Origin: Macrostomum lignano
Taxonomy: Eukaryota
DNA: 64,000 nucleotides
Assembly (NCBI GenBank): GCA_002269645.1
Contig: NIVC01001105.1
Coordinates: 24,334 to 88,333 of the forward strand
Direction of reading: 5' to 3'
In this document: in pieces, positions 8,998-45,447 of the stretch
Numbering within the stretch: position 1 is the stretch's first letter
Layout of the letters: each line of letters begins with the position of its first letter
Program-made: the position numbers and the translations under genes
The notes under the pieces: generated by a model
The model's input: the letters and a program-made list of their open reading frames with translations, nothing else
Told to the model about the DNA's origin: nothing
The model's database searches: none

Positions 8998-9792
<795 letters not shown>

Positions 9793-10071
9793 TGAGGTTC
9801 GGCACATGCATGTATTCGTAGATAGAGTTGGTACTTTTAATTAAAATTACGAGAACAAACTAGGAGACGCAGAGAATAAATCTAGTAATTATATTAGGAG
9901 TTAAGTGCATTGTGGTATAAAAGTCAAACTCAAACACCTTCACGATGCTACAACTATTAAAAAACCTACAATATACGAGTTAGTCATTGGTATTATATGT
10001 CAATGGCCTCTTAATATACCCTATCGTATTCGGATGCAGTTTACGAGCGTGACGTCGGGTTCAAATTTTAG

Positions 10072-15508: not shown

Positions 15509-16369
15509 ATTTCAGTTTTGGAACTGCTTTTATCTCTGCTGCTGGGGGATCTTTTATAAGCTCGAATTGTTTATTAGAGGTAAGGGGTTGTGTGCACCCT
15601 GGTGCACTTTAAGCGACATTGCCCCATTCTGCCCGATGAGAACGTTACCTAGGCTAAGAAGCGTCCCATTGTCACTTGCGTCGTTTTGACTTTAGACGAC
15701 TTTATTATAAAACAAGATGTCGCCGTACAAGTTGCCAAAAAGTCGTCAAAGAGTCGCCTAAGTGTCAATTTGGGGCGTTTTATTGTCTAAAAATTTGAAA
15801 CCACTTTGGAACTGTAAAGTCGTATCTGTAGAAGCACTGAGTTGCGACTAAAGTGCGTATCTGCATCAGCTATTGAATTTGATTTCCACCTTTATTCCCA
15901 GATACTTTCCACCTTAGACTAAATCCTCGCTTTGAATGCTTATCAAGTTGAGTGGTTTATTGGTAATTAACGTTTAATTACGGCTCGTTTATAACAAAGG
16001 TGGTAAGATATCTACGAGTATTGACAGTTAGTCAAATCCATTTTATTTACCGGTAATTCAAATTTGTGCCAAGCGATAGGTCTAGTTTCTAATATGCGTC
16101 AATGCTGGCGTCTATTTGAATTGGATTTAATGCATGCAAGTTTTCAAGAAATAAAAAAACTGTCTGTTTTCCAGCTGTCAGTTTACACTTTGTATATGCG
16201 TTAATAAATGCTCTTGCCATGCATTTCTCTGTTACCTGATTAACTGTTCTAATTTTTCTGCTTTCATTTTTTTATTTTTAGCCTTAGAATTGGTCAGGAG
16301 TCTGACATGAAGGGTGGCTATTGAGTAGGTTTTCTTGTGTAGTGTGTCTTTAAGTGTCTTGTGTAGATT

Positions 16370-17412
16370 CAGGTGACTCTTTTGTAGTTTCAGGTGACTC
16401 TTTTGTAGTTTCAGGTGACTCTTGTAGTTTCAGGTGACTCGTGTGTAGTTTCAGGTGACTCTTTTGTAGTTTCAGGTGACTCTTTTGTAGTTTCAGGTGA
16501 CTCTTTTGTAGTTTCAGGTGACTCTTTTGTAGTTTCAGGTGACTCGTGTGTAGTTTCAGGTGACTCTTTTGTAGTTTCAGGTGACTCGTGTGTAGTTTCA
16601 GGTGACTCTTTTGTAGTTTCAGGTGACTCGTGTGTAGTTTCAGGTGACTCTTGTGTAGTTTCAGGTGACTCTTGTGTAGTTTCAGGTGACTCTTGTGTAG
16701 TTTCAGGTGACTCTTGTGTAGTTTCGGGTGACTCTTGTGTAGTTTCGGCTGACTCTTGTGTAGTTTCGGCTGACTTTTGTGTAGTTTCATGTGACTCTTG
16801 TGTAGTTTCAGGTGACTCTTGTGTAGTTTCAGGTGACTCGTGTGTAGTTTCGGGGGACTCTTGTGTAGTTTCGGCTGACTTTTGTGTAGTTTCATGTGAC
16901 TCTTGTGTAGTTTCGGGTGACTCTTGTGTAGTTTCGGGTGACTCTTGTGTAGTTTCGGGTGACTCTTGTGTAGTTTCGGGTGACTCTTGTGTAGTTTCGG
17001 GTGACTCTTGTGTAGCTTCGGGTGACTCTTGTGTAGCTTCGGCTGACTTTTGTGTAGCTTCAGGTGACTCTTGTGTAGTTTCGGGTGACTCTTGTGTAGT
17101 TTCGGGGGACTCTTGTGTAGCTTCGGGTGACTCTTGTGTAGCTTCGGGTGACTCTTGTGTAGCTTCAGGTGACTCTTGTGTAGTTTCGGGTGACTCTTGT
17201 GTAGCTTCAGGTGACTCTTGTGTAGTTTCGAGTGACTTGTGTAGTTTCGGATGACTCTTGTGTAGCTTCGGGTGACTCTTGTGTAGTTTCGGGTGACTCT
17301 TGTGTAGTTTTGGGTGACTTGTGTAGTTTTGAGTGACTCTTGTGTAGTTTCGGGTGACTCTTGTGTAGTTTGGGGTGACTCTTGTGTAGTTTTGGGTGAC
17401 TTGTGTAGTTTC
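16370..17412. repeat. 21-bp minisatellite GTAGTTTCAGGTGACTCTTGT
   Basis: About 50 tandem units; source of the VVSGDSC and KLHKSHL ORFs. Confidence 0.97.
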
Positions 17413-17594
17413 CTTCTCGATTTTCAGTTGACTTAAAAAATCATTAAAACGCTAGTTTTGCTACTGAAAGTAGCATTACTCTCGTCTACTGTACAGGTTT
17501 GTGATTCCAGTTTTTATGCTACTTTAATTTCAGTAGTATTGTAAGCTTATTATGACTATCTATTGGATTTATTGCAGCTCAAAATCAGCTTGAA

Positions 17595-18404
17595 ATGTCC
17601 CGGCCAGTGTCGCAGGACACCTACAACAGTCTGGTACGCGAGAATATTGACGAATTCGACATGCCGCCAGATGAAGCAATCGAAGATGCTGTTAAACAGC
17701 TGGAGGCTCAGAAAGCTTCTATTGGTTTGATAGTGCAGGACTTGCCGCTTTATCCGGAGGGTCGGCATCCTCTTGTGCTGGCTGTTAACGCTGTCGTGTT
17801 GTCAGCTGACTCTGTGGCTACTCAAACCAAGGACCAGCTACTCAGCCAGATTGGCGAGCTGTCCCATCAGCTAGCTGCCGGCTTGCCTCATCGGGTTCTG
17901 GCTGCCCAGCTTCGCGTCGCGCCCGCACTGCTGAGCCTGGCTTCTGAGCCGTCGGATTCCTCCGTAGCCTGCGCCGCGCTGCGCTGTCTCCGACGCCTAT
18001 TGAAACAGCAATCGGATGCGCTGAATTCTGATCAGCTGATCGGCCTGCTGGCTAGGGCTAAGCTATTGGCTGGAGTGGCTGATACTACTGCTGATGGAGA
18101 AGTAGTAGTAGCGGAAAATGCTGTGGCCGAGACTGGCGATGCGTGTGTTGAAGCCGAAGAGGAGGAGGCGGCTGACGAAGGCACGCCTGAATCGGCTGCT
18201 GAGCTCACCGCCCTGCTAGGCGTCCTTGGCAGCTCGTGTGTGCTGAACGAGGCCAACCGTCAGCTGTTGGTGCTCAACGGCCTGGTGCCAATGCTGGCTC
18301 GACTGATGAGAACTCAGCCAGGAAGGGAAGCTTTGATCTGTCAGGCCTGTCGGCTGTTTCGCCTGCTCACTCTGGACGATGATGTTCGGGCGGTTGTTGG
18401 CCAG
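17595..18404 (+). CDS. ARMC6: Armadillo repeat protein ARMC6, exon 1
   Basis: VSQDTYNSLVRENIDEFDMPPDEAIEDAVKQLEAQ matches the ARMC6 N-terminus; ends LDDDVRAVVGQ at donor CAG|GTGAGT. Confidence 0.88.
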
Positions 18405-18493
18405 GTGAGTATGGGATGTCCGTGATATCAGCTGTCTTGGGAGCTCCTAACTGGGAGTGCCTGTTTGGTAATGCGAGCTCTTGAGCACTGTGT

Positions 18494-19472
18494 AGATTTT
18501 TGAGTAGGTTTGTGTGATTATTGAGTAGTTTTGTGTGATTATTGAGTAGGTTTGTGTGGTATTTGAGTAGGTTTGTGTGATTATTGAGTAGTTTTGTGTG
18601 ATTATTGAGTAGTTTTGTGTGATTATTGAGTAGGTTTGTGTGATATTTGAGTAGGTTTGTGTGATTATTGAGTAGTTTTGTGTGATTATTGAGTAGTTTT
18701 GTGTGATTATTGAGTAGGTTGATGTGATTATTGAGTAGTTTTGTGTGATTATTGAGTAGTTTTGTGTGATTATTGAGTAGGTTTGTGTGATTATTGAGTA
18801 GTTTTGTGTGATTATTGAGTAGTTTTGTGTGATTATTGAGTAGTTTTGTGTGATTATTGAGTAGGTTTGTGTGATTATTGAGTAGTTTTGTGTGATTATT
18901 GAGTAGTTTTGTGTGATTATTGAGTAGGTTGATGTGATTATTGAGTAGTTTTGTGTGATTATTGAGTAGGTTGATGTGATTATTGAGTAGTTTTGTGTGA
19001 TTATTGAGTAGTTTTGTGTGATTATTGAGTAGTTTTGTGTGATTATTGAGTAGTTTTGTGTGATTATTGAGTAGGTTTGTGTGGTATTTGAGTAGGTTTG
19101 TGTGATTATTGAGTAGTTTTGTGTGATTATTGAGTAGTTTTGTGTGATTATTGAGTAGGTTGATGTGATTATTGAGTAGTTTTGTGTGATTATTGAGTAG
19201 TTTTGTGTGATTATTGAGTAGTTTTGTGTGATTATTGAGTAGTTTTGTGTGATTATTGAGTAGTTTTGTGTGATTATTGAGTAGTTTTGTGTGATTATTG
19301 AGTAGGTTTGTGTGATTATTGAGTAGGTTTGTGTGATTATTGAGTAGGTTTGTGTGATTATTGAGTAGGTTTGTGTGATTATTGAGTAGGTTTGTGTGAT
19401 TATTGAGTAGGTTTGTGTGATTATTGAGTAGGTTTGTGTGATTATGGAGTAGTTTTGTGTGATTATTGAGTG
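18494..19472. repeat. 21-bp minisatellite GTGATTATTGAGTAGTTTTGT in ARMC6 intron 1
   Basis: Directly visible tandem array. Confidence 0.97.
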
Positions 19473-19475
19473 GGG

Positions 19476-19694
19476 ATCAGTGATCATTGGTTAGGGTTCA
19501 GTGATCATTGGTAGGGTTCAGTGATCATTGGTTAGGGCTCAGTGATCATTGGTTAGGGTTCAGTGATCATTGGTTAGGGTTCAGTGATCATTGGTTAGGG
19601 TTCAGTGATCATTGGTTAGGGTTCAGTGATCATTGGTTAGGGTTCAGTGATCATTGGTTAGGGTTCAGTGATCATTGGTTAGGGTTCAGTGATC
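19476..19694. repeat. 21-bp minisatellite GTTCAGTGATCATTGGTTAGG (contains TTAGGG) in ARMC6 intron 1
   Basis: About 10 near-identical units. Confidence 0.95.
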
Positions 19695-19734
19695 CAATGG
19701 GTAAACTTATACCACTAACCAATGCTCTGGCCAG

Positions 19735-20063
19735 GCTCACGAACGAGCTCGCCAAGTGATGTCGGAGACCCCGGCTCTCGCCCTACTGCTGCGCCTGTGC
19801 CGCCGCTACAATCGGCCAGAGTCGGCCCGCACAGTGGCCCGAGTGTTCGACACCTTAGCCTGTCTGGCCGTGCGCGACGAATTCTGTCAGCGAGCTTTAG
19901 AACTGGGCGCCTGCGATTTCATTGTTGGCGCAATTTACGCGCACAGCCAGGAGCCTCAGCTGGCCGCCTCCGGCATGGGATTATTGCGCAATCTGGCCCG
20001 CAACGATCAGGTTAAACGGGCGGCCGCTGAGCACCTGCCCGTGCTGCTGGATGTGGCTACCAA
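19735..20063 (+). CDS. ARMC6: ARMC6 exon 2
   Basis: Acceptor CCAG at 19734; AHERARQV..LAVRDEFCQ..LARNDQVK matches ARMC6 AHNHAK..LAIRNEFCQ..IAGNDDVK; phase-2 donor AA|GTGAGT. Confidence 0.85.
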
Positions 20064-20091
20064 GTGAGTTCTACTGCAGCTGGTAGCCCGC

Positions 20092-20712
20092 CAGCTTTTG
20101 AGTCCTCCAGTTTTCCGCCCCCTTCACCCCCAGTTTCCGCCCCCTTCACCCCCAGTTTTCCGCCCCCTTCAACCCCCAGTTTTCTGCCCCCTTCACCCCC
20201 CAGTTTTCCGCCCCCTTCACCCCCAGTTATCCGCGCCATTCGGTCCCCAGTTATCCGCCCTATTCAGTCTCCAGTTATCCGCCCCATTCACTCCCCAGTT
20301 ATCTGCCCTATTCAGTCTCCAGTTATCCGCCCCATTCACTCCCCAGTTATCCGCCCCCTTCACCCTCAGTTTCCACCCCCTTCAACCTCCAGTTTTCCGC
20401 CCCCTTTACCCCCAGTTATCCGCCCCATTCACTCCCCAGTTATCCGCCCTATTCAGTCTCCAGTTATCTGCCCTATTCAGTCTCCAGTTATCCGCCCCAT
20501 TCACTCCCCAGTTATCCGCCCCCTTCACCCTCAGTTTCCACCCCCTTCAACCTCCAGTTTTCCGCCCCCTTTACCCCCAGTTATCCGCCCCATTCACTCC
20601 CCAGTTATCCACCCCATTCAGTCCCCAGTTATCCGCCCCATTCAGTCCCCAGTTATCCGCCCCATTCAGTCCCCAGTTATCCGCCCCATTCAGTCCCCAG
20701 TTATCCGCCCCA
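20092..20712. repeat. C-rich 23-24-bp minisatellite CCCCAGTTATCCGCCCCATTCAGT in ARMC6 intron 2
   Basis: Tandem array; G-run-rich on the minus strand. Confidence 0.95.
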
Positions 20713-20723
20713 AAATTGCGCAG

Positions 20724-21114
20724 ATTCGCCAAGCAGGCCCCGGTGGCGCACCAGTTCCTAGGCCTGGCCGCCAACCTGTGCCTCCGTCAGCCGGCCACGG
20801 CCCGCCGATTTGCCGCCGAGCTGCCCGGCCCGGCGCTGCTGTCCCTGCTGGCCGCTCTTCACCGGCCAGACTCCGCCCTGATGCGCCAGCTCTGCCTGTG
20901 CGTTCGCAATGTGGCCGCTCGCGACGACTCAGCGGATTCTGGCGGCCTGGTTCGGCCCGCGCTGCTGGCGCACGGCATGGAGTCGCTGATGAACGGCCTG
21001 CTTGCCGTCTGCAAAGACGAGGCCAAAGCGGCTCTGCTGGCGATGGGCTGCGATGTCAAATTTGAGCCAATGCTCTGGACCGGGAAAAATGGCCAACTAC
21101 CTAGGGGCGATTGA
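20724..21114 (+). CDS. ARMC6: ARMC6 exon 3 (spliced protein 509 aa)
   Basis: Acceptor GCAG at 20723 restores the frame; AKAALLAMGCDVKFEPMLWTG matches ARMC6 [20 protein letters not shown]. Confidence 0.85.
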
Positions 21115-21115
21115 C

Positions 21116-21378
21116 AGCGTTGAGACAGGCTCATGATGGTTTAGAGTGATGAGACAGGCTCATGATGGTTTAGAGTGAATAGGGAATCAATTATGGTTTT
21201 GAGTGAATAGGGAATCAATTATGGTTTTGAGTGAATAGGAAGAGTCCATGATGGTTTTGAGTGAATAGGGAGAGTCCATGATGGTTTTGAGTGAATAGGG
21301 AGAGTCTATGATGGTTTTGAGTGAATAGGGGGAGTCCATGATGGTTTTGAGTGAATAGGGGGAGTCCTTGATGGTTCT
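21116..21378. repeat. 30-bp minisatellite ATGATGGTTTTGAGTGAATAGGGAGAGTCC
   Basis: About 8 units directly after the ARMC6 stop codon. Confidence 0.9.
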
Positions 21379-21937
21379 TAGGAACTTGTGAAACCTCTGT
21401 CGTTAGTTTAAACTCGTAAAAACTTAATAGACATTAAAATTTCGATTTTAGTTAGAAATCCAGGTACCTGAATGTTGAAATTTTATGTTAAAATCGTCAG
21501 AATCGAGATGAGGTGAGCAGTGGGCTTCAGTTTTACAAATATTCAGCTAAGGTGAAACGTGATTCTTTCGTATTCGTAACATGTTTTTATGCCTTTTTGC
21601 AAATGAACTTAAATTCAGAAATTAATGAAAACTTTTCTCTCGCAAAACGCTACTAGCACTACTGAAATCCGCTGTACGCTTTTTATTGACTTTCTTTCTT
21701 TATTGTCTGATACTTTCATTTTTTATATGCTATTGTCTGCCTAGCCAGGTTAGTGCTTGACTCAAATGCTCCCCGAACACATTCTGTGACAAACTTCGTA
21801 ATGTTGAGTTGTCAGATTTAAAGGTTTTGAATTGGTCCCACCTTTTTTTGACTTCCCTCCACTTACGATTCTGCAAAATTTTCATTATTTACTTTTTGTA
21901 TATTTTCATGTAGATGTAGAGTTGACTGTAGAGGACT

Positions 21938-23218
21938 TAAGATGGGATATTGGGAATAAAGGATGGGATTATGGAGATAAAGGATGGGATATTAAGGATA
22001 AAGGATGGCATATTGAGGATAAAGGATGGGATATTAAGGATAAAGGATGGAATATTAAGGATAAAGGATGGAATATTGAGGATAAAGGATGGAATATTGA
22101 GGATAAAGGATGGCATATTGAGGATAAAGGATGGGATATTGAGGATAAAGGATATGATATTAAGGATAAAGGATGGGATATTAAGGATAAAGGATGGCAT
22201 ATTGAGGATAAAGGATGGGATATCGAGGATAAAGGATGGCTATTAAGGATAAAGGATGGGATATAAAGGTTAAAGGATGGGATATCGAGGATAAAGGATG
22301 GGATATCGAGGATAAAGGATGGCATATTGAGGATAAAGGATGGGATATCGAGGATAAAGGATGGGATATTGAGGATAAAGGATGGGATATTGAGGATAAA
22401 GGATGGGATATAAAGGTTAAAGGATGGGATATCGAGGATAAAGGATGGGATATTGAGGATAAAGGATATGATATTAATGATAAAGGATGGGACATCGAGG
22501 ATAAAGGATGGCATATTGAGGATAAAGGATGGGATATTGAGGATAAAGGATGGCATATTGAGGATAAAGGGTGGGATATTAAGGATAAAGGATGGCATAT
22601 TGAGGATAAAGGATGTGATATCAAGGATAAAGGATAGATATTGCGGATGAAGGATGGGATATTAAGGATAAAGGATGGGATATTGAGGATAAAGGATATG
22701 ATATTAAGGATAAAGGATGGGATATTGAGGATAAAGGATGGGATATTGAGGATAAAGGATGGGATATTGAGGATAAAGGATATTAAGGATAAAGGATGGG
22801 ATATCGAGGATAAAGGATGGCATATTGAGGATAAAGGATGGGATATCGAGGATAAAGGATGGCATATTGAGGATAAAGGATGGGATATTGAGGATAAAGG
22901 ATGGGATATTAAGGATAAAGGATGGGATATCGAGGATAAAGGATATGATATTAAGGATAAAGGATGGCATATTGAGGATAAAGGATGGGATATTAAGGAT
23001 AAAGGATGGCATATTGAGGATAAAGGATGGGATATTAAGGATAAAGGATGGGATATTAAGGATAAAGGATGGGATATTGAGGATAAAGGATAGATATTGC
23101 GGATGAAGAATGGGATATTAAGGATAAAGGATGGGATATTGAGGATAAGGGATGGGATATTAAGGATAAAGGATGGCATATTGAGGATAAAGGATGGGAT
23201 ATCAAGGATAAAGGATAG
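21938..23218. repeat. 21-bp minisatellite GATAAAGGATGGGATATTGAG
   Basis: About 60 units; source of the IEDKGWD and ILRIKDG ORFs. Confidence 0.97.
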
Positions 23219-23280
23219 GAGGCTCAAAAGTTCCCTGACCTGACTGTTCAGGATTTCGTGTATCTCCTGTCACTCCGCAG

Positions 23281-24231
23281 TCGGCGACTGTGGCAGACCG
23301 CGACGGCGCGACCGCCCTGACCTCGGCAGCAATCGGGGGCCTCGAGACGGGCTCACCTGAGTGGCACCTGCTGGTCACCTACCTGGAGGACGTGCTGGAC
23401 TGTTGCGAATCGCTGCCAGGCGATCTGCAGGCCTGCCTATCCCAGTACCGAGAGCTCGACGCTCGCTGCCACGCCTCGGTGGCCGATTTAGAACGTCTAG
23501 CAGCTTCGTCGAATTCGTCAGAGTCGTCAGCTGCTGTCGGCGTCTCAGTGCAGCGCGCCGTAGCGCGGCTACAGGAGCTCGGCGAGGAGAAAATGCGCCT
23601 AGCCGGCCTCGTCCAGGAGCTGCTCGACGGCCGCCGCACTCGGCTGGATGATGGCAAGAGAAACCTGCTGGCTAGGATTGAAGCTGCGGCCGCCGCGGCG
23701 AGGGCTGCCAGTCCGGCCTCGTCGACACAGCAGCAGCAGCGGCGCCAGCATCATCAGAAGCGAGCCTCGGCCGGTGAGAGACGACGCTCGGCCGCCGCCG
23801 CCGCTGCCGCAGCATCCGACAAAGATGAAGCGGCATCTTCAAATGCCAGTAGCAGTAGTCGGGATCTGCTGACTTCAGTCGGTGGCGGCGCGGCGGCAGC
23901 AACGGCAACTGCGGCGACATCGTCGAAGCGTCGGCGAGTCCGTCAGCAGCAGCAGCAGACGCCAGCCAGCGCACCGAAGAAGCGCCAGCAGCAGCAGTCG
24001 CAGCAGAAGGCGTCAAAGAGCCAGCAACAGCAGCAGCAAGGCGGATCAACTAATGAGGAGTCCCGACGCTACTGCATCTGCAACAAAGTCTCATTCGGCG
24101 AGATGATCGCCTGCGACAATGCCCGCTGCGCCATCGAGTGGTTCCATTTCCGCTGCGTGAAGCTCACCTCTGAGCCCAAAGGCAAATGGTACTGCCCGGA
24201 CTGTCGCAAGGACAAGCAGAAGAAAGCTTAA
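23281..24231 (+). CDS. ING1: Inhibitor of growth (ING1/2-like) PHD-finger protein; exon has no initiating ATG
   Basis: [20 protein letters not shown] and LQELGEEK match the ING N-domain; [48 protein letters not shown]; acceptor TCCTGTCACTCCGCAG at 23280. Confidence 0.9.
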
Positions 24232-24663
24232 ATTGAACTCTGATTAGCTTTTTTTTCTAATTGTAATTATTTATAAATATATACCGAGTACCGGTCTGCG
24301 CCGGTGTTGGGAGGTCGTGTAAAAAAGTAATAACTGAATTACGCAATCCGAACCATTTAAACAAAAAAATCGTGCGCCGTGTACTCTTTGTCTCTCTCTC
24401 TCCAAACTGGATCGCAATAAATGCTCTCGGGTGTCGAGCAATCTCTCAGGGGGGGGGGGGGGAACACTGGTTGCATAAATTAACAAAACAACTCATTTTT
24501 CCTGTGCTTGCCTAACAGTCAGTGGTCATAAAAAATCTCGCAAGCAAGTCATGCGCGCAAATCACTGAGCAATCCAACTAATTACCGCCGGCTATTTAAG
24601 CTTGCCGGAACGCAAAAGCAAACAGTGGAGAGTGGCGCTTTTAGCTGAAGGCTAAGCAGAAAA

Positions 24664-24987
24664 ATGGCCATGCCAGTTTTTGATCGCCTTCGAATTGGCA
24701 GCCGGCTTTGCCGGGTAGCCTTGGCCGAACTGGCCGCCACCTTCTTGCTGGTGTCCCTGTGCCTGTCCGCCTCAGCCAACTGCCTGGTCTCGCGGCACTC
24801 CAGCAGCAGTTCAGGCGGCGGGGCAGAGGACGCCTCCGTCTTGATGGCCACCATCGGGTCCGGCCTGGCGCTGGCGTTGGCTGTGTACGCCAGCTTCGGC
24901 GTGTCTGGCGGCCACGTCAATCCGGCCGTGTCGCTGGCTTTGCTGGCCGTGGGCCGGATGACCCTGCTCGACTTCCTGGTCTATCAG
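24664..24987 (+). CDS. Aquaglyceroporin (AQP3/7/9/10 group), exon 1
   Basis: AELAATFLL helix 1 and GVSGGHVNPAVS (NPA 1); phase-0 donor CAG|GTGGGT. Confidence 0.9.
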
Positions 24988-25094
24988 GTGGGTTCTACCA
25001 GCGGAATGCGTCAGTCTGTAGAATTCCTTGAAACTTCTGGTTTAGAGCTAGCACTGAAAATGTGCTGACTGTCTTTAGTACCGTTAGATTACCG

Positions 25095-26172
25095 GTTTTA
25101 CTGGGTGTCTCACCTGTTCTACTGAGTGTCTTACCTGTTCTACTGAGTGTCTCACCTGTTCTACTGAGTGTCTCACCAGTTCCGCTGAGTGCCTTACCTG
25201 TTCTACTGAGTGTCTTACCTGTTCTACTGAGTGTCTCACCTGTTCTAATGAGTGTCTTACCTGTTCTACTGAGTGTCTCACCTGTTCTACTGAGTGTCTT
25301 ACCTGTTCTACTGAGTGTCTCACCTGTTCTACTGAGTGTCTTCCTGAGTGTCTCACCTGTTCTACTGAGTGTCTCACCTGTTCTACTGAGTGTCTCACCT
25401 ATTCTACTGAGTGTCTTACCTGTTCTACTGAGTGTCTCACCTGTTCTAATGAGTGTCTTACCTGTTCTACTGAGTGTCTCACCTGTTCTACTGAGTGTCT
25501 TACCTGTTCTACTGAGTGTCTCACCTGTTCTACTGAGTGTCTCACCTGTTCTACTGAGTGTCTTCCTGAGTGTCTCACCTGTTCTACTGAGTGTCTCACC
25601 AGTTCCGCTGAGTGTCTCACCTGTTCTACTGAGTGTCTCACCGGTTCCGCTGAGTGTCTCACCTGTTCTACTGAATGTCTCACCGGTTCTACTCAACGTC
25701 TCACCTGTTCTACTCAATGTCTCACCTGTTATACTGAGTGTCTCACCTGTTCTACTTAATGTCTCACCTGTTCTACTCAATGTCCAACCTGTTCTACTGA
25801 GTGTCTCACCTGTTCTACCGGGTGTCTTACCTGTTCTACCGGGTGTCTCACCTGTTCTACCGGGTGTCACCTGTTCCGCTGAGTCTCAACAGTTCTACTG
25901 AGTGTCTCACCTGTTCTACTCAATGTCTCACCTGTTCTACTCAATGTCTCACCTGTTCGACTGAGTGTTTCACCTGTTCTACTAAGTGTCTCAACAGTTC
26001 AACTGAGTGTCTCACCTGTTCTACGGGGTGTCTCACCAGTTCTCTTGAGTGTCTCACCAGTTCTCTTGAGTGTCTCACCGGTTCTACTGAATGTCTCAAC
26101 AGTTCAACTGAGTGTCTCACCTGTTTTACTGAATTTCTCACCTGTTCTACCGGATGTCTTTCCTGTTCTACT
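25095..26172. repeat. 21-bp minisatellite CTCACCTGTTCTACTGAGTGT filling the aquaporin intron
   Basis: About 50 units. Confidence 0.97.
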
Positions 26173-26210
26173 GTCGCCGGTTGTACTGCACTTTAATATT
26201 TCGTCGATAG

Positions 26211-26843
26211 GCCGCCCAATACCTTGGCGCGTTCGCTGGCGCTGGCGCAGTGTACACATTCTACGCCCCGATGCTGGACGCCATTGACGGCGGCCGCCGT
26301 GTCGCTTTCGGCGCCAACGGCACCGCCGGAGTGTTTGTCACTCTGCCGCACCCGAGTGCCAGTCTGTCCATTGTTCTGGCCAATCAGCTGTTCACCTCCG
26401 CCGCCTTCATGCTGGCCGTTCGCGCCGTGACCGACGGCGCCAACGCAAATCCGGCCACCGGTCTGCAGCCGCTGCTGGTCGGCCTGTCGGCCACCTGCCT
26501 GCTGCAGTGCACCCTGCCCGTGTCCGGCTGCACCCTCAACCCGGCCAGGGACTTTGCGCCTCGCCTGTTCGCCAGCCTGGCCGCTGGCTACGGCCTGCCG
26601 CTCCTGCCGGCCGTCGGGCCGCGCGCCTTCTGGGCGCCGCTAGTCGGGCCCTATCTGGGCTGCGCGCTGGGCTCGCTGGTTTACGAGCTGTGCTTCCACC
26701 GGCAGTTGAAAGTATTCGGCAAGTCGGCCGGAGTCAACGAAGTCGCCGATGACGAAGCTGCAGACGGTAGAGGCGATGGCGAGCTCAAGAAGCTGATGAT
26801 GGTTGACAGGGCCACCTCAAAAATGCAGATTTCGGATGAGTGA
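26211..26843 (+). CDS. Aquaglyceroporin, exon 2 (spliced protein 318 aa)
   Basis: Acceptor GATAG at 26210; AAQYLGAFAG, NGTAGVFVTLP and SGCTLNPARDFAPRLF (Asp after NPAR is the glyceroporin signature). Confidence 0.9.
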   Translation, partial: AAQYLGAFAGAGAVYTFYAPMLDAIDGGRRVAFGANGTAGVFVTLPHPSASLSIVLANQLFTSAAFMLAVRAVTDGANANPATGLQPLLVGLSATCLLQCTLPVSGCTLNPARDFAPRLFASLAAGYGLPLLPAVGPRAFWAPLVGPYLGCALGSLVYELCFHRQLKVFGKSAGVNEVADDEAADGRGDGELKKLMMVDRATSKMQISDE

Positions 26844-28143: not shown

Positions 28144-28304
28144 GTGAGTAGCGAGTGAGATTGTACTCGCTAGCTGCTGGATGCTACATGAATTCTTCAG
28201 GAATTGTCTCAGTTTTGGTGTGTCAGTAGGTCTCAATCATCGTGTGACTATCAGGGCTGCCACTTTTCGAGCTAAGTTAAGGCACAAATTCAAGTGCCAG
28301 GGGC

Positions 28305-28945
28305 ACCAACTCAAGTGTGTCAGGGGAAACAAGTCAAGTGTGTCAGGGGAAACAAGTCAAGTGTGTCAGGGGAAACAAGTCAAGTGTGTCAGGAGCGACA
28401 AGTCAAGTGTGTCAGGGGAAACAAGTCAAGTGTGTCAGGGGAAACAAGTCAAGTGTGTCAGGGGAAACAAGTCAAGTGTGTCAGTGGAAACAAGTCAAGT
28501 GTGTCAGTGGAAACAAGTCAAGTGTGTCAGGGGAAACAAGTCAAGTGTGTCAGGGGAAACAAGTCAAGTGTGTCAGTGGAAACAAGTCAAGTGTGTCAGG
28601 GGAAACAAGTCAAGTGTGTCAGGGGAAACAAGTCAAGTGTGTCAGGGGAAACAAGTCAAGTGTGTCAGGGGAAACAAGTCAAGTGTGTCAGGGGAAACAA
28701 GTCAAGTGTGTCAGGGGAAACAAGTCAAGTGTGTCAGTGGAAACAAGTCAAGTGTGTCAGGGGAAACAAGTCAAGTGTGTCAGTGGAAACAAGTCAAGTG
28801 TGTCAGGGGAAACAAGTCAAGTGTGTCAGGGGAAACAAGTCAAGTGCGTCAGTGGAAACAAGTCAAGTGTGTCAGTGGAAACAAGTCAAGTGTGTCAGTG
28901 GAAACAACTCAAGTGTGTCAGTGGAAACAACTCAAGTGTGTCAGG
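28305..28945. repeat. 23-bp minisatellite CAAGTCAAGTGTGTCAGGGGAAA in globin intron 1
   Basis: About 28 units. Confidence 0.97.
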
Positions 28946-29006
28946 GGCGACAATTTAAGTGTCATCAAGCGCATCTGCTTTATCAGCGGCCGCCCGCATC
29001 CCTCAG

Positions 29007-31814: not shown

Positions 31815-32774
31815 TCACAGGACAGGATTTGAACCCGCGCCCAGCTGCTCCGCCCGCCCCATCCAGGCAAAGCGCCGGCCCGTCAGCTCCGCCAGTCGGA
31901 GGTTGTGCGGTTCAAAGTAGGCGCGCAGCTTGGCCAGAGTCACCGGCGACACCGGCGGATGCTGGCGGCCCTTCTCGCTGCCCAGACAGCGCTGCCGCTG
32001 CCGCCGGCCCCGAACGCAGTAGAATCCCTTGGTAGAGTTGAACACGAACTGCTCCGGCCGATTGAGGAAGCTGGGCAGGCTGAGGAACTGCTCAACCAGG
32101 CGGAGCTCTTCGTGCGGCTCGCCGATCAACCGGTCGCCGTCGACAATGTGCAGCCGGTCGGCGGGAAAGTGGCGCAGCCAGCGGCGCAGATGCCGATGAT
32201 AGACGGAAGTTTGAATCATCCGGGAGCGCGGGTTCACCCGGCCGGAGCCGGACAGTACAAGCCGTTCCAATGGACGGGCCGGCCGTCCCGCTTTGGCCCG
32301 ACGGTGCAGGTGCTGGGCGTAGTCGCTGACAACCCGGGTCACGGGGTCGCGCAAAATCAGCAGCAGGCGCAGATTGGCGCCAAGCTGACGGCGCGCCAGC
32401 CGCGGCGCCGCCTCGGTAACAAAATAGGCGGGCGTCTTCTCGATCGTGAACTGGCCGGGCCGGCTGCGGGGCATCTGGCCGCGGTACCAGCTGAGGCCCC
32501 GCCGCAGCCTGTCCGTCTTGTCGAAGTAGTGAATCTCGCTTCTGGCCGCGGCCACGTTCGGATGAGCGTCTAGAAAGTCCAGGAGGGCGCGGGTGCCGCA
32601 CTTCCTGGCGCCGATAATGATGCAGTGTGGCAGCTGCTGCTGCGGCGGCGGTGGGGGCGACGGCGGCGGCGTCCGGTGACCGCGGAGGAGGACAGCGACG
32701 GTCAGGAGTGCCGCGGTGGCCAGCAGGGCTGCCAGGCCGATCCGCAGCAGCAGCCGCCCGCCATGGCCGGACAT
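31815..32774 (-). CDS. HS3ST: Heparan sulfate glucosamine 3-O-sulfotransferase (HS3ST1/5-like), single coding exon
   Basis: N-terminal TM helix; 5'-PSB IIIGARKCGTRALL; EIHYFD; IEKTPAYF; 3'-PB ILRDPVTRVVSDY; FNSTKGFYC; CLGSEKGRQHP. Confidence 0.92.
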   Translation of the reverse strand: MSGHGGRLLLRIGLAALLATAALLTVAVLLRGHRTPPPSPPPPPQQQLPHCIIIGARKCGTRALLDFLDAHPNVAAARSEIHYFDKTDRLRRGLSWYRGQMPRSRPGQFTIEKTPAYFVTEAAPRLARRQLGANLRLLLILRDPVTRVVSDYAQHLHRRAKAGRPARPLERLVLSGSGRVNPRSRMIQTSVYHRHLRRWLRHFPADRLHIVDGDRLIGEPHEELRLVEQFLSLPSFLNRPEQFVFNSTKGFYCVRGRRQRQRCLGSEKGRQHPPVSPVTLAKLRAYFEPHNLRLAELTGRRFAWMGRAEQLGAGSNPVL

Positions 32775-39891: not shown

Positions 39892-40166
39892 CGGCGCTGG
39901 CGACCCTATCCAGTGGCTTCGGCCGAATTTGGGTATGCGGGTCTGGCTCGCCAACCTGCAGGCCGTGGTACTGCTCAACGTACTCTCTAATGCCTAAGGT
40001 GTTGACCGTGCCGATGGGCTGGAAGGCCGGGGAGTAGTCCGGTCGCAAGCGGTCCCCCTCCTGGTGTCGGGCCAGCCTTGAGGGTGCTATTGGCCTACTG
40101 CCCGGTCAGGTGGAGCGGCCGGGTGGGTACCGCGCCCCTTTGAGGGTAGCCCACCAACCTTTTATC

Positions 40167-41687
40167 ATGGCCTTCGAGCCGACTATGGATAAACAAGCTA
40201 TTTCTAGGGACGGGGACCCTTCTAAACCCCAACCTCAGTCCGAAGGACCGGCCGGCCCTGCTGGCAGATCCCAACCGACTGATTCAACTGTGGCAAAGGA
40301 AGGACCGGCTGGCTCTGCTGGCAGATCCGACCAGAGCTACCAAACTCAAAATACCCTAAGACCTGCCAGCTCCGCTGGTGGATCTAAGGGAACCGCGAGC
40401 TCTGAGCCTAAAGGACCGGCCAAATCTGGCAGATCCGATGAAGCTCAGCGGGCTCGGCTTGAGCGCAAACGCGCTAAACAACGCGCCAAAAGGCAGGCCA
40501 AGAAGGGAGCTGCGGGGGCCAAAGCGGCGGCGTCCACCATGGATGCTGAAGCGACTGGAGTCCCAAGGCAACCAGGCGGGCCGGCCGGTGGAAGCTCCAG
40601 TAGTTCAGCGGCGGCGCTCCCTGGAGCTGCTGCCGCGGCTGCTGAGGCCGAAACCACGGCGCAACAAATGGCCACTGCCAACAAGGAGGTTCCTTCGGGA
40701 GCTACCTTTGCGGCGAAGGCCAAGGCCAAAATCCCGGGAGTGATCATCCAAGGTCGCGACCAGGACTGGACCACTGATCAGCTTCAAAAAGTGTGGAGTG
40801 CTGTTGACTCCTATCTGATTGAGCTGACTGTCGAGGAGGGAATCTCCATCGGCGTTGAGCGGATGGTGCTGCGAAGCACATTCGTTCTTATTGCTCCTAG
40901 CAGCGAGGAGGACGCTCGGCGGCTGCTCCAGCGGCTACCGACGGTCTCCTTGGATGCTGACCTTGGCGGAGCTCTTTTTCTTCGCGAGGGCCAGCGTCCA
41001 AAGACGATACCCTATGTGGTTTTCGTCCCTGCTAAGAGCACCGCAGCTGGACCAGACGTTATTCGCCGGGTCCTACTGCGTCTGAACCCCGACCTCCCTG
41101 CTAGTGGACTGGTGTATCACCGTAAAGTCCGCAGGGGGGAGACGGGCAACTCAATTGTCCTCGGCCTTTCCAGCACTTGGGCGAGTCGGTACCCTAATGG
41201 ATCCTCTTTCCAGCTGGGTGCCCTCAAGCTCAAGTTGCGCCGAGGAAAGTCTGCCAAAGGGAAGGCTACTGCCAACCCCGGCATCTCCGGCAAGAGCGGG
41301 GCGCAGTCTAAGGCCCAAGGAAAGGCGCAAGCCGATCCCAAAGCCAAAGCTGCATCTCGCCCCTCTGCTAGCAGCAGTTCGGCGACCGCGGTAACGGCTC
41401 CGGCCAAGCCCCGGGAACCAAACCTGCCAGTCGGAGAAGGAGTTGAGGACGAGGCCGGGTCTTCGGAATCCGAGCTCTCCTCGGCCACCTTGGTGGGGTC
41501 TGAAGGTAAAGATGCAGGTGAGGAAGCTTCCTCCATCCTGTCATCGGAGCCTGAGGACTCTGCTGGGGGGCCGGTGGGGGTGAGGAGGCCATGGACGTCG
41601 ACCAACTCCCATCTCCCAGTCAAGCCCCAGCGGCCTGGGACGAGGACGATCTGTTGTCCAAGTCTCCTTGATGGCCCTGGGCTCTAG
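40167..41687 (+). CDS. LINE ORF1 (nucleic-acid-binding/chaperone protein); probable frameshift near 41575
   Basis: ATG at 40167; basic and low-complexity N-terminus, globular middle, acidic tail; position upstream of ORF2; no CCHC knuckle seen. Confidence 0.75.
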   Translation: MAFEPTMDKQAISRDGDPSKPQPQSEGPAGPAGRSQPTDSTVAKEGPAGSAGRSDQSYQTQNTLRPASSAGGSKGTASSEPKGPAKSGRSDEAQRARLERKRAKQRAKRQAKKGAAGAKAAASTMDAEATGVPRQPGGPAGGSSSSSAAALPGAAAAAAEAETTAQQMATANKEVPSGATFAAKAKAKIPGVIIQGRDQDWTTDQLQKVWSAVDSYLIELTVEEGISIGVERMVLRSTFVLIAPSSEEDARRLLQRLPTVSLDADLGGALFLREGQRPKTIPYVVFVPAKSTAAGPDVIRRVLLRLNPDLPASGLVYHRKVRRGETGNSIVLGLSSTWASRYPNGSSFQLGALKLKLRRGKSAKGKATANPGISGKSGAQSKAQGKAQADPKAKAASRPSASSSSATAVTAPAKPREPNLPVGEGVEDEAGSSESELSSATLVGSEGKDAGEEASSILSSEPEDSAGGPVGVRRPWTSTNSHLPVKPQRPGTRTICCPSLLDGPGL

Positions 41688-41710
41688 CCAGATATTGCAT
41701 TTAATACAGT

Positions 41711-44700
41711 ATGACTAAGCTCCACGCTGCCAAAGGAGCGACATTCTGTCTGCAAATAAATTTACAGCATTGCGTATCTGCGTCAGTAAATCTGATGAAG
41801 ATTGCTGAGCTGTACAGGCCAGGCCTCATCCTGATCCAGGAACCCTGGATGCGCAACGGTAAGTTGCCCAACATTCCCTCTGGCTACTCTGATTTTTATG
41901 TGTGTGGCCCGGGGAACAGCCGCCCTAGAGCGGCTATCCTCGCTGCTAGCCATCTCCAGGCTTGGCTGAGGACTGATCTCTCTGATGGAGACCTTTGCGT
42001 CATCCAATCTAATCATTTCTCTCCGCGTACGTGTCTTGTTGCCTCGGTTTATATCCCAGGCGACAGAGACCCTGCTCCGAGAGTTTACTGCGCCTTGCGC
42101 AGTACTGCGAGTCCCAGAACGCTGAGCTGTGCTTAGGGGGCGACCTCAACGCGCACCACAAGCACTGGGGCAGCAAAGATACCAACACTAGAGGAGAGGA
42201 GCTTCTGGCCCTCATCTCTAACACAAACCTCATGCTCTGCAACCGCGGCAGCACTCCTACCTTTAATAATGGCAGATGGACCGAGGTCCTCGACGCCACA
42301 CTCGTTACCCCAAGACTCTTTGACAGAGTCAAGGAGTGGAGAGTCTGGTCTGAGGAGCCCTCCCTGTCTGACCACTGCTTTATCGCCTTTAATATCGCGG
42401 ACACTAAAACCCAGTCTCCGATCACTTGGAGACGCAATATCCGCAACACTGATTGGGCGGCCTACAAGGCTGCCCTTGATCTGCACCTGCAGGAACTCAC
42501 GGACTTACGTCCGATTGAGACCTGCGAGGATGTGGATCATATGGCTGAGACGCTGACAGGTTGCATTATTGCAGCCTACGAAGCGGCTTGTCCTGCTCGC
42601 GCCTACAGAGGCAAGACCTCGGCGCCGTGGTGGAACCCGGAGCTGGGGAAACTCAGGCGGAAGGCCAAAAGCCTTCATCGCCGTGCCATGAAGACCGGAA
42701 ACCCGGAGGACATGGAGCTTTTCCGGCAAGCCTCCCGCAATTTCAAATCTGAAGTGCGCAAGGCCAAGGAATGTAAGTGGCGCCAATTCTGCAATGAATT
42801 GGATCAAGACAGACCTACTTCTAGGCTTGTCAAGGCCCTTACAATGGACAAAATGTCCAAATTAGCCATGATCAAAAAAGATGATGGCTCTCTTACTAAA
42901 GACCCTGAAGAAGTGCTTCAGCATATGCTTAGCACATTCTTCCCGAGGGTACCTACTGCTAGACCGGAGCCCAACCATTCGATGGATGGAGCCACCCTAG
43001 CGGCGGGCATTGTCACTGAAGACCTAATCGCTCGTGCGGTCAGAACCTTCAAACCCTTCAAATCTCCTGGACCTGATGGTATCTACCCTGTTCTCCTTCG
43101 TGAAGCAGCCAAGATACCCTCGTTCCTGAGACTCACCCGCAATCTTATGCGGGCCTCTATCCAGCTGGGATACGTTCCCAAAAGCTGGACTGAAGCTCGA
43201 GTAGTCTTTATTCCCAAACCTGGGAAGGGTGACTACCAAAGCGTCAAGGCCTTCCGGCCAATTAGCTTAACGTCAGCAATGCTTAAGCTCACTGAGAGGC
43301 TTATTCTCTGGCGGCTGCTCTCCTGCGAGCTGACAGCGATGCCCCTCAGCAATAATCAGCACGCCTTCCGTACCGGGAGGTCGACTGACAGCGCCCTGCA
43401 TGCGATTGTCGAAAAGATTGAACGGGCGGTACTGGGTGACGGTTACGCCCTGGCTCTCTTTCTTGACATTGTTGGCGCCTTCGACAACGTTATCTTTGAA
43501 GCGTTTCAGAGGGCCCTTCAAAATCGCAAAGCTCATGCTACCCTCATACGGTGGATCATGTACATGATCTCCAACCGTACGGTCACTGCCCAACTTCTTG
43601 GGCAAACTGCCTCCACCAGAGTCTGTAAGGGTGGACCCCAAGGCGGAGTCCTCACCCCGACGCTCTGGAACCTGGTCATGGACGCTCTTCTGAGTGACTC
43701 CCGACCTGACCCCGTCTTCAAAGTCGGGTATGCTGATGACGTCACGGCCATTGTGGCAGGACCGTCTCCCAGCACGCTCAGGGATCTGATGCAGAGCTTT
43801 ATCCGCAAAGCAGAATCCTGGGCCAATGACAATGGTTTGGAACTCTCTGAGCCCAAAACCGTTGCCATTATGTTTACCAGCAGACTACGCTGGAACATAC
43901 GTCCTCTGCAGCTCTACGGCAGAGATATTGCCTTCGCGCACCAGACCAGATGTCTCGGGGTCACACTTGACCACCGGCTCAACTGGTCCTTCCACGTGAA
44001 AGCAAAAGCTAAGCGTGCCTCAGCCATCCTGGCCCAGCTCCGACGAGCACTTGGCACTTCTTGGGGTCTATCCCCAAAGCGGCTTTGGTGGATCTATACT
44101 TCCGTAGTTAGACCTGCCATTACGTACGCCTCTGTTGTCTGGGTTAGCGCTACCCAGGTCAAAAGCCATGCAGACCTGCTCAACACGATCCAAGGCAGAG
44201 CGTGTAGGCTCATCTGCAACGCCACCAGGTCCACGCCCTTTGCTGGCATGGGGGCCTTTCTTAATCTTCCGCCTCTTGACCTCTTCATCAGGGGTGAGGC
44301 GGCTAGAACGACGCGGCGTCTAATTGATGCCGGCGTCAAATTCATTTACATGAGAGCACCTGCTAAGCGGAACCTTGTCCCGCATAGCGATCTGTGCCTC
44401 AACTTTCTCAACGAGTGTCAGGCCAATCGCGTCTTCACCGATGGCATTGCCTCAACGCTCAACCTGAGACAGCGCTACTCCGTAGCTATCGACTCGCGCG
44501 ATAACATCAATGACCATTGGAACCCTGGTGAGCTTCATTGCTACACCGACGGTTCTAAGCAGTCAGCCAACACCGGCTTTGGTGTTGGAATCTTTCTGAA
44601 CGGGAGGGTCATCGCTACCCACGCTCAATACACTGGGGTCAACTCCAGTGTTTTCCAAAATGAAGTTCTGGCCATCAGCTCCTGCACTGCAGAGCTTCTC

Positions 44701-45447
44701 GCCACTGGCGTTACTGGTAAGAACATCATTTTCCATTCGGACAGCCAAGCTGCCTTGCACGCCATCAGTGGCTGCAGCACCAACTCTGCTACAGTCCTTG
44801 ACTGTATCAAACTCCTCAATGTGTTGGGTTCCGCCAACAAAATTACCCTTAAGTGGGTTCCGGGGCATGTGGGGATCCGAGGAAATGAGTTGGCTGACAC
44901 CCTTGCAAAAGTTGGTGCCTCCGGCTCCTCTCTCGGCCCCGAACCTCTTGTCCCGATTCCTGGCTGTGTCATCGACTCGCGCATCAAAGCGTGGATCAGG
45001 ACCAGCACCGCTCGACTTGGGCGAACGCACTACTGCAGGCAATCCAGAGGCGCTGTCCCTCAGCCCTCTCACCAGCTCCGGAAGCTCCTCTTGCGCCTCT
45101 CGCGCAGAGACATCCGGGCTGCCACCATGACCCTCTCTGGTCACGGCTGCTTCTCCAGGCACCAGTACCTGCAGGGCAACGCCACCAACGCCACCTGTAG
45201 TTTCTGCAACTCAGGTGACGAAACCGCTGAGCATTTCGTCAGCATCTGTCCCGCCTTCACGCGGGCCAGACTCACTTACCTCGGGCCACACACATCTATT
45301 ACTGAAGCGTGCAAACCCGAAAACTTTAATCAGCTCATGCGCTACCTTCGGGCCACCCGCAGGGCTGAACTCTCCTTTCCAGAGAGCACCATAGCTGCTG
45401 GCGACACTGGGGGACCTCCCTGGGCGGCGCCAACCCTCCGTCCATAG
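41711..45447 (+). CDS. LINE ORF2 (APE endonuclease, RT, RNase H, CCHC) with a -1 frameshift near 42078
   Basis: QINLQH / IQEPW / GDLNAHH / SDH (APE); GPDG, FRPISL, FLDIVGAFD, PQGGVLTP, YADD (RT); YTDGSK, NEVLAI, SDSQAAL, WVPGHVGIRGNELAD (RNase H); CSFC..ETAEHFVSIC. Confidence 0.93.

Follow-up and report, generated by a model that had tools for sequence, protein, structure and literature searches.

How can a conserved chromatin regulator be made in full when its open reading frame has no start codon ahead of its characteristic N-terminal domain? The question is raised by an inhibitor of growth (ING) gene in a 64,000-nt stretch of DNA (the window, to which all positions below refer unless another locus is named), whose exact source is contig NIVC01001105.1 of the Mlig_3_7 assembly of Macrostomum lignano. 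An earlier note, written from the letters of the window and in ignorance of the organism, had guessed at a flatworm, rightly as it turns out, and had proposed that translation of this gene depends on a spliced leader (SL) that ends in AUG being trans-spliced to it.

A reading frame without a genomic start codon

The genomic part of the ING1/2-like coding sequence (CDS) is a single exon at 23281..24231 (+) that comprises 316 codons and a TAA stop (24229-24231) and does not encode an initiator Met. The frame starts with TCG GCG ACT GTG at 23281 and is open from there to the TAA, while on its 5' side it is closed by an in-frame TGA (23236..23238, +), so that unspliced RNA cannot lengthen the ING open reading frame (ORF) in the 5' direction. 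The TCG lies 15 codons past this TGA and is thus in phase 0. Between the two we observe a pyrimidine-rich tract with a 3' splice acceptor, GATTTCGTGTATCTCCTGTCACTCCGCAG (23252..23280, +), which ends in TCCGCAG with its last base at 23280 and is our proposed SL trans-splice acceptor. The TGA, the end of the acceptor and the open frame had all been read in the same way in the earlier note, as had the first in-frame ATG, which follows 104 codons (23593..23595, +) and is codon 105 counted from 23281. This ATG carries an A at -3 and is the first in any frame past the acceptor; a scan of the sequence from 23200 to 23592 found no ATG in any of the frames. When the order of the 104 codons is shuffled, 6% of the shuffles likewise contain zero ATGs, a frequency that is suggestive but not significant.

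The acceptor coincides with a change in base composition: the 60 nt before it have a G+C of 0.52 and the next 100 nt one of 0.71, and across the first 33 ING codons GC3 reaches 0.82. At the other end of the gene, the likely ING poly(A) signal as read from the sequence is an AATAAA at 24416..24421 (+), ~185 nt past the ING stop and ~225 nt before the acceptor of the next gene. A run of ~14 G residues (24450-24463) lies 3' of this signal, and its length differs among the homeologs.

ING domains and the position of the internal methionine

Preceded by the ATG of the SL, the ORF from 23281 has 317 codons and specifies a 317-aa ING1/2-like protein. Pfam places the ING N-terminal domain (PF12998) at residues 35-128 of this Met-prefixed protein (23380..23661, +), with a score of 47.1 bits against a cut-off of 23.9 and a match to profile positions 1-100 of 102, and a C-terminal PHD finger (PF00628) at residues 266-309 (24073..24204, +), with 24.6 bits versus a cut-off of 24.0. 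The conserved PHD motif YC.C....GEMI.CDN..C..EWFH..CV can be seen in the protein. The top matches outside Macrostomum are animal proteins that bear the name inhibitor of growth protein 1 or 2 and show ~31% identity over ~90% of the query, and by sequence the M. lignano protein appears to be of the ING1/2 type rather than of the ING3/4/5 type.

With respect to the internal methionine, the ATG at 23593 corresponds to residue 106, and 71 of the 94 residues of the ING domain precede it. A start at this codon would therefore cost the protein about three quarters of its ING N-domain, and the boundaries given by Pfam (residues 35-128) agree with the claim of the earlier note that the ATG lies beyond most of that domain. 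Aligned with ING1/2-like homologues, the M. lignano protein has its internal Met at the final L/M position of ELGDEK[L/M], a conserved motif within the ING domain, and the homologues' own Met stands opposite its residue ~12-13. It could be argued that the AUG at 23593 is nonetheless the only one used, in which case the upstream frame would be 5' UTR and the product a 212-aa protein that has the PHD finger but is missing most of its ING domain. In favor of this are its rank as first genomic ATG in any frame, its A at -3, and the fact that an SL added at another AG (23250-51, see below) would place only a 23-codon out-of-frame uORF ahead of it. However, the 104 codons upstream encode an in-frame ING N-domain that spans Pfam profile positions 1-100, these codons have a coding-like GC3, and Met 106 aligns with an internal conserved position of the homologues. 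We thus consider exclusive use of the internal AUG improbable, and an internal-AUG form that coexists as a minor isoform plausible.

Fit of the M. lignano spliced leader to the ING frame

A single SL of 35 nt has been described for M. lignano, CGGTCTCTTACTGCGAAGACTCAATTTATTGCATG, which ends in ATG; in the SL RNA gene, GTAAG comes next (PMC8629364). A longer reconstruction of the SL shares this 3' end (PMC5173321). The SL has no ATG other than the terminal one, whose frame runs through the SL without a stop. When the SL is joined at 23281, its ATG is in phase with the ING ORF with no stop in between, and the phase 0 that the earlier note anticipated for this junction holds with the actual leader of the species, whose 3' end is ATG. 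The window itself contains no SL RNA gene, and Rfam at gathering thresholds returned no matches in it.

The published trans-splice motif of M. lignano is YTNCAG, and GT[G/A]AG is the donor consensus of the species (PMC8629364). The ING acceptor, CCGCAG, departs from YTNCAG by one mismatch, the missing T, and a second AG at 23250-51 (GTTCAG) also shows one mismatch to the motif. The latter is possibly a minor SL site, from which the SL-AUG would be out of frame and would open a uORF of 23 codons. At the 23281 junction, the SL-AUG would have a U at both -3 and +4, a weak context under the vertebrate Kozak rule, which may not reflect the preference of M. lignano.

This context, with neither a purine at -3 nor a G at +4, is one of the points in favor of initiation at near-cognate codons of the open frame, such as CUG 23317 (codon 13, GCC CUG A) or GUG 23290 (codon 4). 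Such codons lie in frame ahead of the ING domain, and codon 13, the CUG, coincides with the place to which the N-termini of homologues align. However, non-AUG initiation is normally inefficient, and on a trans-spliced mRNA the in-frame SL-AUG would be met first by scanning ribosomes. Passages in PMC9851317 furthermore document the flatworm SL AUG as an initiator, and we regard a near-cognate start for ING as very unlikely.

Candidate upstream exons

An unannotated cis-spliced exon upstream, joined at 23280, is a further conceivable source of the ATG, and the earlier note had set an exon of this kind, with an in-frame ATG, against its own reading. Between 21115 and 23280 there are 21 phase-0 ATG...|GT combinations, and the ATG at 21472 (donors TAT|GTTAAA or ATC|GTCAGA, both weak) is kept in all three homeologs and is the sole shared candidate. 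None of the 21 candidates, however, has a GT[G/A]AG donor, and most of them lie within tandem repeats and are not common to the homeologs. The sole GTRAG donor in the intergenic region, at 21513 (ATG 21508-10, followed by AG and GTGAG), is in phase 2 and thus out of frame, as had been noted earlier for the donor near 21510. In addition, two independent gene models begin at 23281 rather than further upstream, and the annotation makes ING an internal member of a transcriptional unit. The enumeration of the intergenic region thus gave no credible cis exon, and the chance that one supplies the start codon is slight.

Gene models and homeologous copies

The deposited CDS (P0121, 316 aa) starts exactly at 23281 with SATVADRDG, without Met, and an older and independent model from the ML2 annotation, UniProt A0A1I8IJB7 (P0266), likewise starts with SATVADRDG. 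The downstream part of A0A1I8IJB7 is an ING-aquaporin chimera. A second UniProt entry, A0A1I8JPQ5 (P0123), was considered as evidence for a cis-spliced fusion and rejected, as it is a model of the older ML2 annotation in which ARMC6, ING and MIP are fused with frameshifts. It is named 'ANK_REP_REGION domain-containing protein' and, together with A0A1I8IJB7, maps to ~20700-26843. These ML2-based fusion models contain frameshifted stretches and invented introns and make for misleading entries.

We compared homeologous loci on three contigs, with the window as L002 (window coordinate = L002 + 13280) and the others as L001 and L003. The two further contigs carry the RRP7-like, ARMC6-like, ING and aquaporin genes in the same order and on one strand. 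All three homeologs (3/3) are identical from the end of the tandem repeat through the ORF start, acceptor included, and with the three contigs in agreement across the junction, an assembly error does not account for the lack of an ATG. Homeolog identity is ~99.6% in the ORF and equally so in unique intergenic DNA, for which reason agreement between homeologs was rejected as a test of selection. Despite the identical DNA, the deposited ING CDS in L001 and L003 starts 6 nt later (their position 10001, equal to window 23287), and public model starts thus carry a boundary noise of a few bases. The start of the ARMC6 CDS in L003 differs by one codon.

GenBank flags the ING CDS as partial, and this flag, like the chimeric and frameshifted older UniProt models at the ING locus, could be taken to mean that the gene is a decaying pseudogene, or an artefact of annotation or assembly, with its first exon lost. 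However, three separate contigs carry the same ORF of 315-316 codons, intact and with both domains, the chimeric models stem from the older ML2 annotation, and 'partial' is a flag that the ORF caller sets for any transcript without an upstream in-frame stop, as with ARMC6 and MIP. Decay or artefact is therefore extremely improbable.

None of the possible products, i.e., the Met-prefixed protein (both alleles), the SL-extended protein and the internal-Met forms, has an exact match in the protein collection. Neither a word-indexed search nor an exhaustive HMMER search found orthologues in other Macrostomum species; the next-best matches were P0122 and P0124, which are unrelated multi-PHD proteins, and the fusion model P0123. 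Mlig015258, the unit to which ING belongs by name (see below), and ING entries are absent from the supplements of PMC8629364, PMC5730564, PMC5816591 and PMC5173321, and a search of open-access full text found no mention of Mlig015258.

Operon context and neighboring genes

Upstream of ING lies an ARMC6-like gene (17580..21114, +) and downstream an aquaporin (MIP) gene (24649..26843, +) with an ATG of its own at 24664. The ARMC6 acceptor, TTATTGCAG, ends at 17577, and the CDS opens 2 nt past it, at the first full codon, with its own ATG at 17595; a CDS start in such a position accords with transcript models whose 5' ends are SL sites. The candidate acceptor of the aquaporin gene, CTTTTAG, ends at 24644, 413 nt past the ING stop and a few bases ahead of the aquaporin CDS.

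Most of the outron, or intercistronic spacer, in front of ING consists of a 21-nt tandem repeat, GATGGGATATTGAGGATAAAG (21941..23220, +; ~61 copies), which ends 60 nt before the acceptor. The ARMC6 stop and the ING acceptor are 2166 nt apart; tandem arrays (21121-21376 and 21941-23220) make up 1536 nt of this stretch and other DNA 630 nt. Tandem repeats are known to inflate intercistronic distances in M. lignano (Ustyantsev and Berezikov, PMC8629364), and the operon criterion used for the species combines the same strand with a repeat-adjusted intergenic distance of <1 kb (PMC8629364). Both the 630 nt between ARMC6 and ING and the 413 nt between ING and MIP lie within this 1-kb limit.

The names of the deposited genes point in the same direction. 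In homeolog L003, BOX15_Mlig015258g1 is the name of the RRP7-like gene and BOX15_Mlig015258g3 that of ING, and from this order we infer that the ARMC6-like gene is g2 of the Mlig015258 unit in that homeolog; MIP stands, by name, in a separate unit (Mlig026851g1). In the published annotation, the TBONE pipeline uses experimentally mapped SL and poly(A) sites to split transcriptional units into genes numbered g1, g2 and onwards (PMC5730564), and a g3 name within a transcriptional unit thus implies that its authors had mapped an SL or poly(A) boundary there. The CDSs of ARMC6 and MIP are flagged as 5'-partial and that of the RRP7-like gene starts at an ATG; the flags of the former two are due to short leaders without an in-frame stop, while the RRP7-like gene has an upstream stop.

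With an SL at the ARMC6 acceptor, the SL-AUG would be out of frame, 17 nt 5' of the genuine AUG, and would open an overlapping uORF of 51 codons. At the aquaporin acceptor, it would again be out of frame, 19 nt 5' of the genuine AUG, with an overlapping uORF of 13 codons. If the SL is added at these two sites, not every ribosome can use the SL-AUG, and much leaky scanning past it, or else reinitiation, would be implied for M. lignano.

Proposed route to full-length ING

SL trans-splicing at 23280/23281 with the SL-AUG as the initiator of ING is the best explanation of this locus, and we give it a probability of roughly 0.8. Its two parts differ in firmness: trans-splicing at 23281 is strongly implied, and initiation by ribosomes at the SL-AUG of the ING mRNA is inferred. 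The dependence on trans-splicing that had been proposed at the outset is supported by the ATG at the 3' end of the SL, by its phase, by the CDS starts at 23281, by the g1/g3 names and by the lack of a plausible cis exon.

According to this model, ING would be expressed as an internal gene of an operon-like cluster in which the RRP7-like, ARMC6-like, ING and aquaporin genes follow one another on the same strand. SL trans-splicing at the CAG that ends at 23280 would discard the repeat-filled upstream RNA, with its 89 ATGs and the in-frame TGA, and the predicted junction would join the end of the SL (...TTATTGCATG; ...CAATTTATTGCATG) to TCGGCGACTGTGGCAG from 23281 onwards. The SL-AUG would then be the first AUG on the mature ING mRNA and, in phase 0 with the TCG at 23281, its initiator codon, and the predicted product would be 317 aa long and would possess the whole ING N-domain as well as a PHD finger. 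Full-length ING would be impossible without trans-splicing. Ribosomes that scan past the weak SL-AUG might produce an N-truncated form of 212 aa from 23593, which would retain the PHD finger and, of the ING domain, only the last quarter; leaky scanning as far as 23593 is conceivable because no AUG in any frame lies in between.

Mammalian ING1 isoforms such as p33ING1b and p24ING1c are generated without trans-splicing, through alternative promoters, exons or internal AUGs. They offer an analogy for the pairing of a full-length form with an N-truncated form that retains the PHD finger, the truncated form of M. lignano being hypothetical. A speculative and on the whole unlikely extension is that obligatory trans-splicing combined with leaky scanning sets a fixed mix of full-length and truncated ING, in which the truncated form could compete, and that an ancestral Met (at ~residue 12-13) was lost after the SL-AUG had taken over, which would have locked the gene into the operon/SL system.

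Precedents and implications

Every reported flatworm SL ends in AUG (PMC12582326). That the SL AUG can serve as initiator Met, and that >40 Schistosoma mansoni cDNAs need it, was shown by Cheng et al. (2006, J Biol Chem 281:733, as cited in passages of PMC9851317 and also of PMC5832876 and PMC12582326); the SL-AUG initiation in Schistosoma on which the earlier note had drawn is found in the relevant passages of PMC9851317 and PMC5832876. For Macrostomum, Wiberg et al. (PMC10468722) label the final ATG of the SL as the translation start codon and keep it in read trimming. As far as those passages describe the S. mansoni SL-AUG mRNAs, they share with ING an SL that ends in AUG, an acceptor whose phase fits a conserved ORF without an AUG of its own, and a dependence of full-protein translation on trans-splicing. 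ING differs from them in that it belongs to a free-living macrostomorph with another SL sequence, is another gene and has a predicted junction and start.

A second group of relatives is formed by the slORFs of nematodes, Oikopleura and trypanosomes (slORFfinder, PMC9851317), in which the SL likewise gives the start codon and annotation misses or truncates the ORF. Most slORFs, however, use a near-cognate NUG within the SL and are often new or short ORFs (PMC9851317), whereas ING would have a canonical AUG that completes a conserved protein. In its same-strand cluster, repeat-inflated spacers, gN names and YTNCAG-like acceptor, the locus resembles the SL-resolved operons of M. lignano (Wudarski 2017, PMC5730564; PMC8629364), and the passages of these two operon papers that were searched do not discuss genes without an AUG of their own. 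In open-access text, we found no paper that names the M. lignano ING gene or counts the SL-AUG-dependent genes of this species. ING is most likely a new example of the SL-AUG mechanism known since 2006 and not a new principle, and knowledge of the mechanism itself is unchanged by it.

What the case adds is a conserved chromatin regulator whose full-length translation should depend wholly on SL trans-splicing, in a flatworm capable of transgenesis, where ING would be a convenient test gene for SL-AUG initiation outside the parasites. Furthermore, other M. lignano CDSs that are listed as 'partial' in GenBank or UniProt may be complete when the SL contributes its ATG, and this start codon is lost in pipelines where the entire SL is trimmed off.

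Other features of the window

The introns and intercistronic spacers of the ING cluster are occupied by tandem arrays with a 21-nt period. There are at least four such arrays, unrelated to each other and 1.0-1.3 kb long each (16357-17412, 18489-19694, 21941-23220 and 25091-26173), and further arrays have periods of 24 (20107-20712) and 23 (28294-28962). Because the period of the 21-nt arrays is a multiple of 3, long spurious ORFs appear on both strands, e.g., one of 348 aa at 22181-23227 (-). Two overlapping ARAGORN calls for tRNA-Pro(agg), of 96-97 nt (19499-19657, +), were set aside as almost certainly false, as they lie within a 21-nt repeat and have no Rfam match.

Elsewhere in the window, we observe a non-LTR retrotransposon (40110-45447, +) with a 1138-aa ORF (42031-45447) that encodes AP-endonuclease, reverse transcriptase and RNase H; its 525-aa ORF at 40110-41687 has no Pfam match and is possibly ORF1. 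The window also holds the first exon of a G-protein alpha subunit gene (9025-9795, +) and a sulfotransferase encoded by a single ORF (31815-32774, -).
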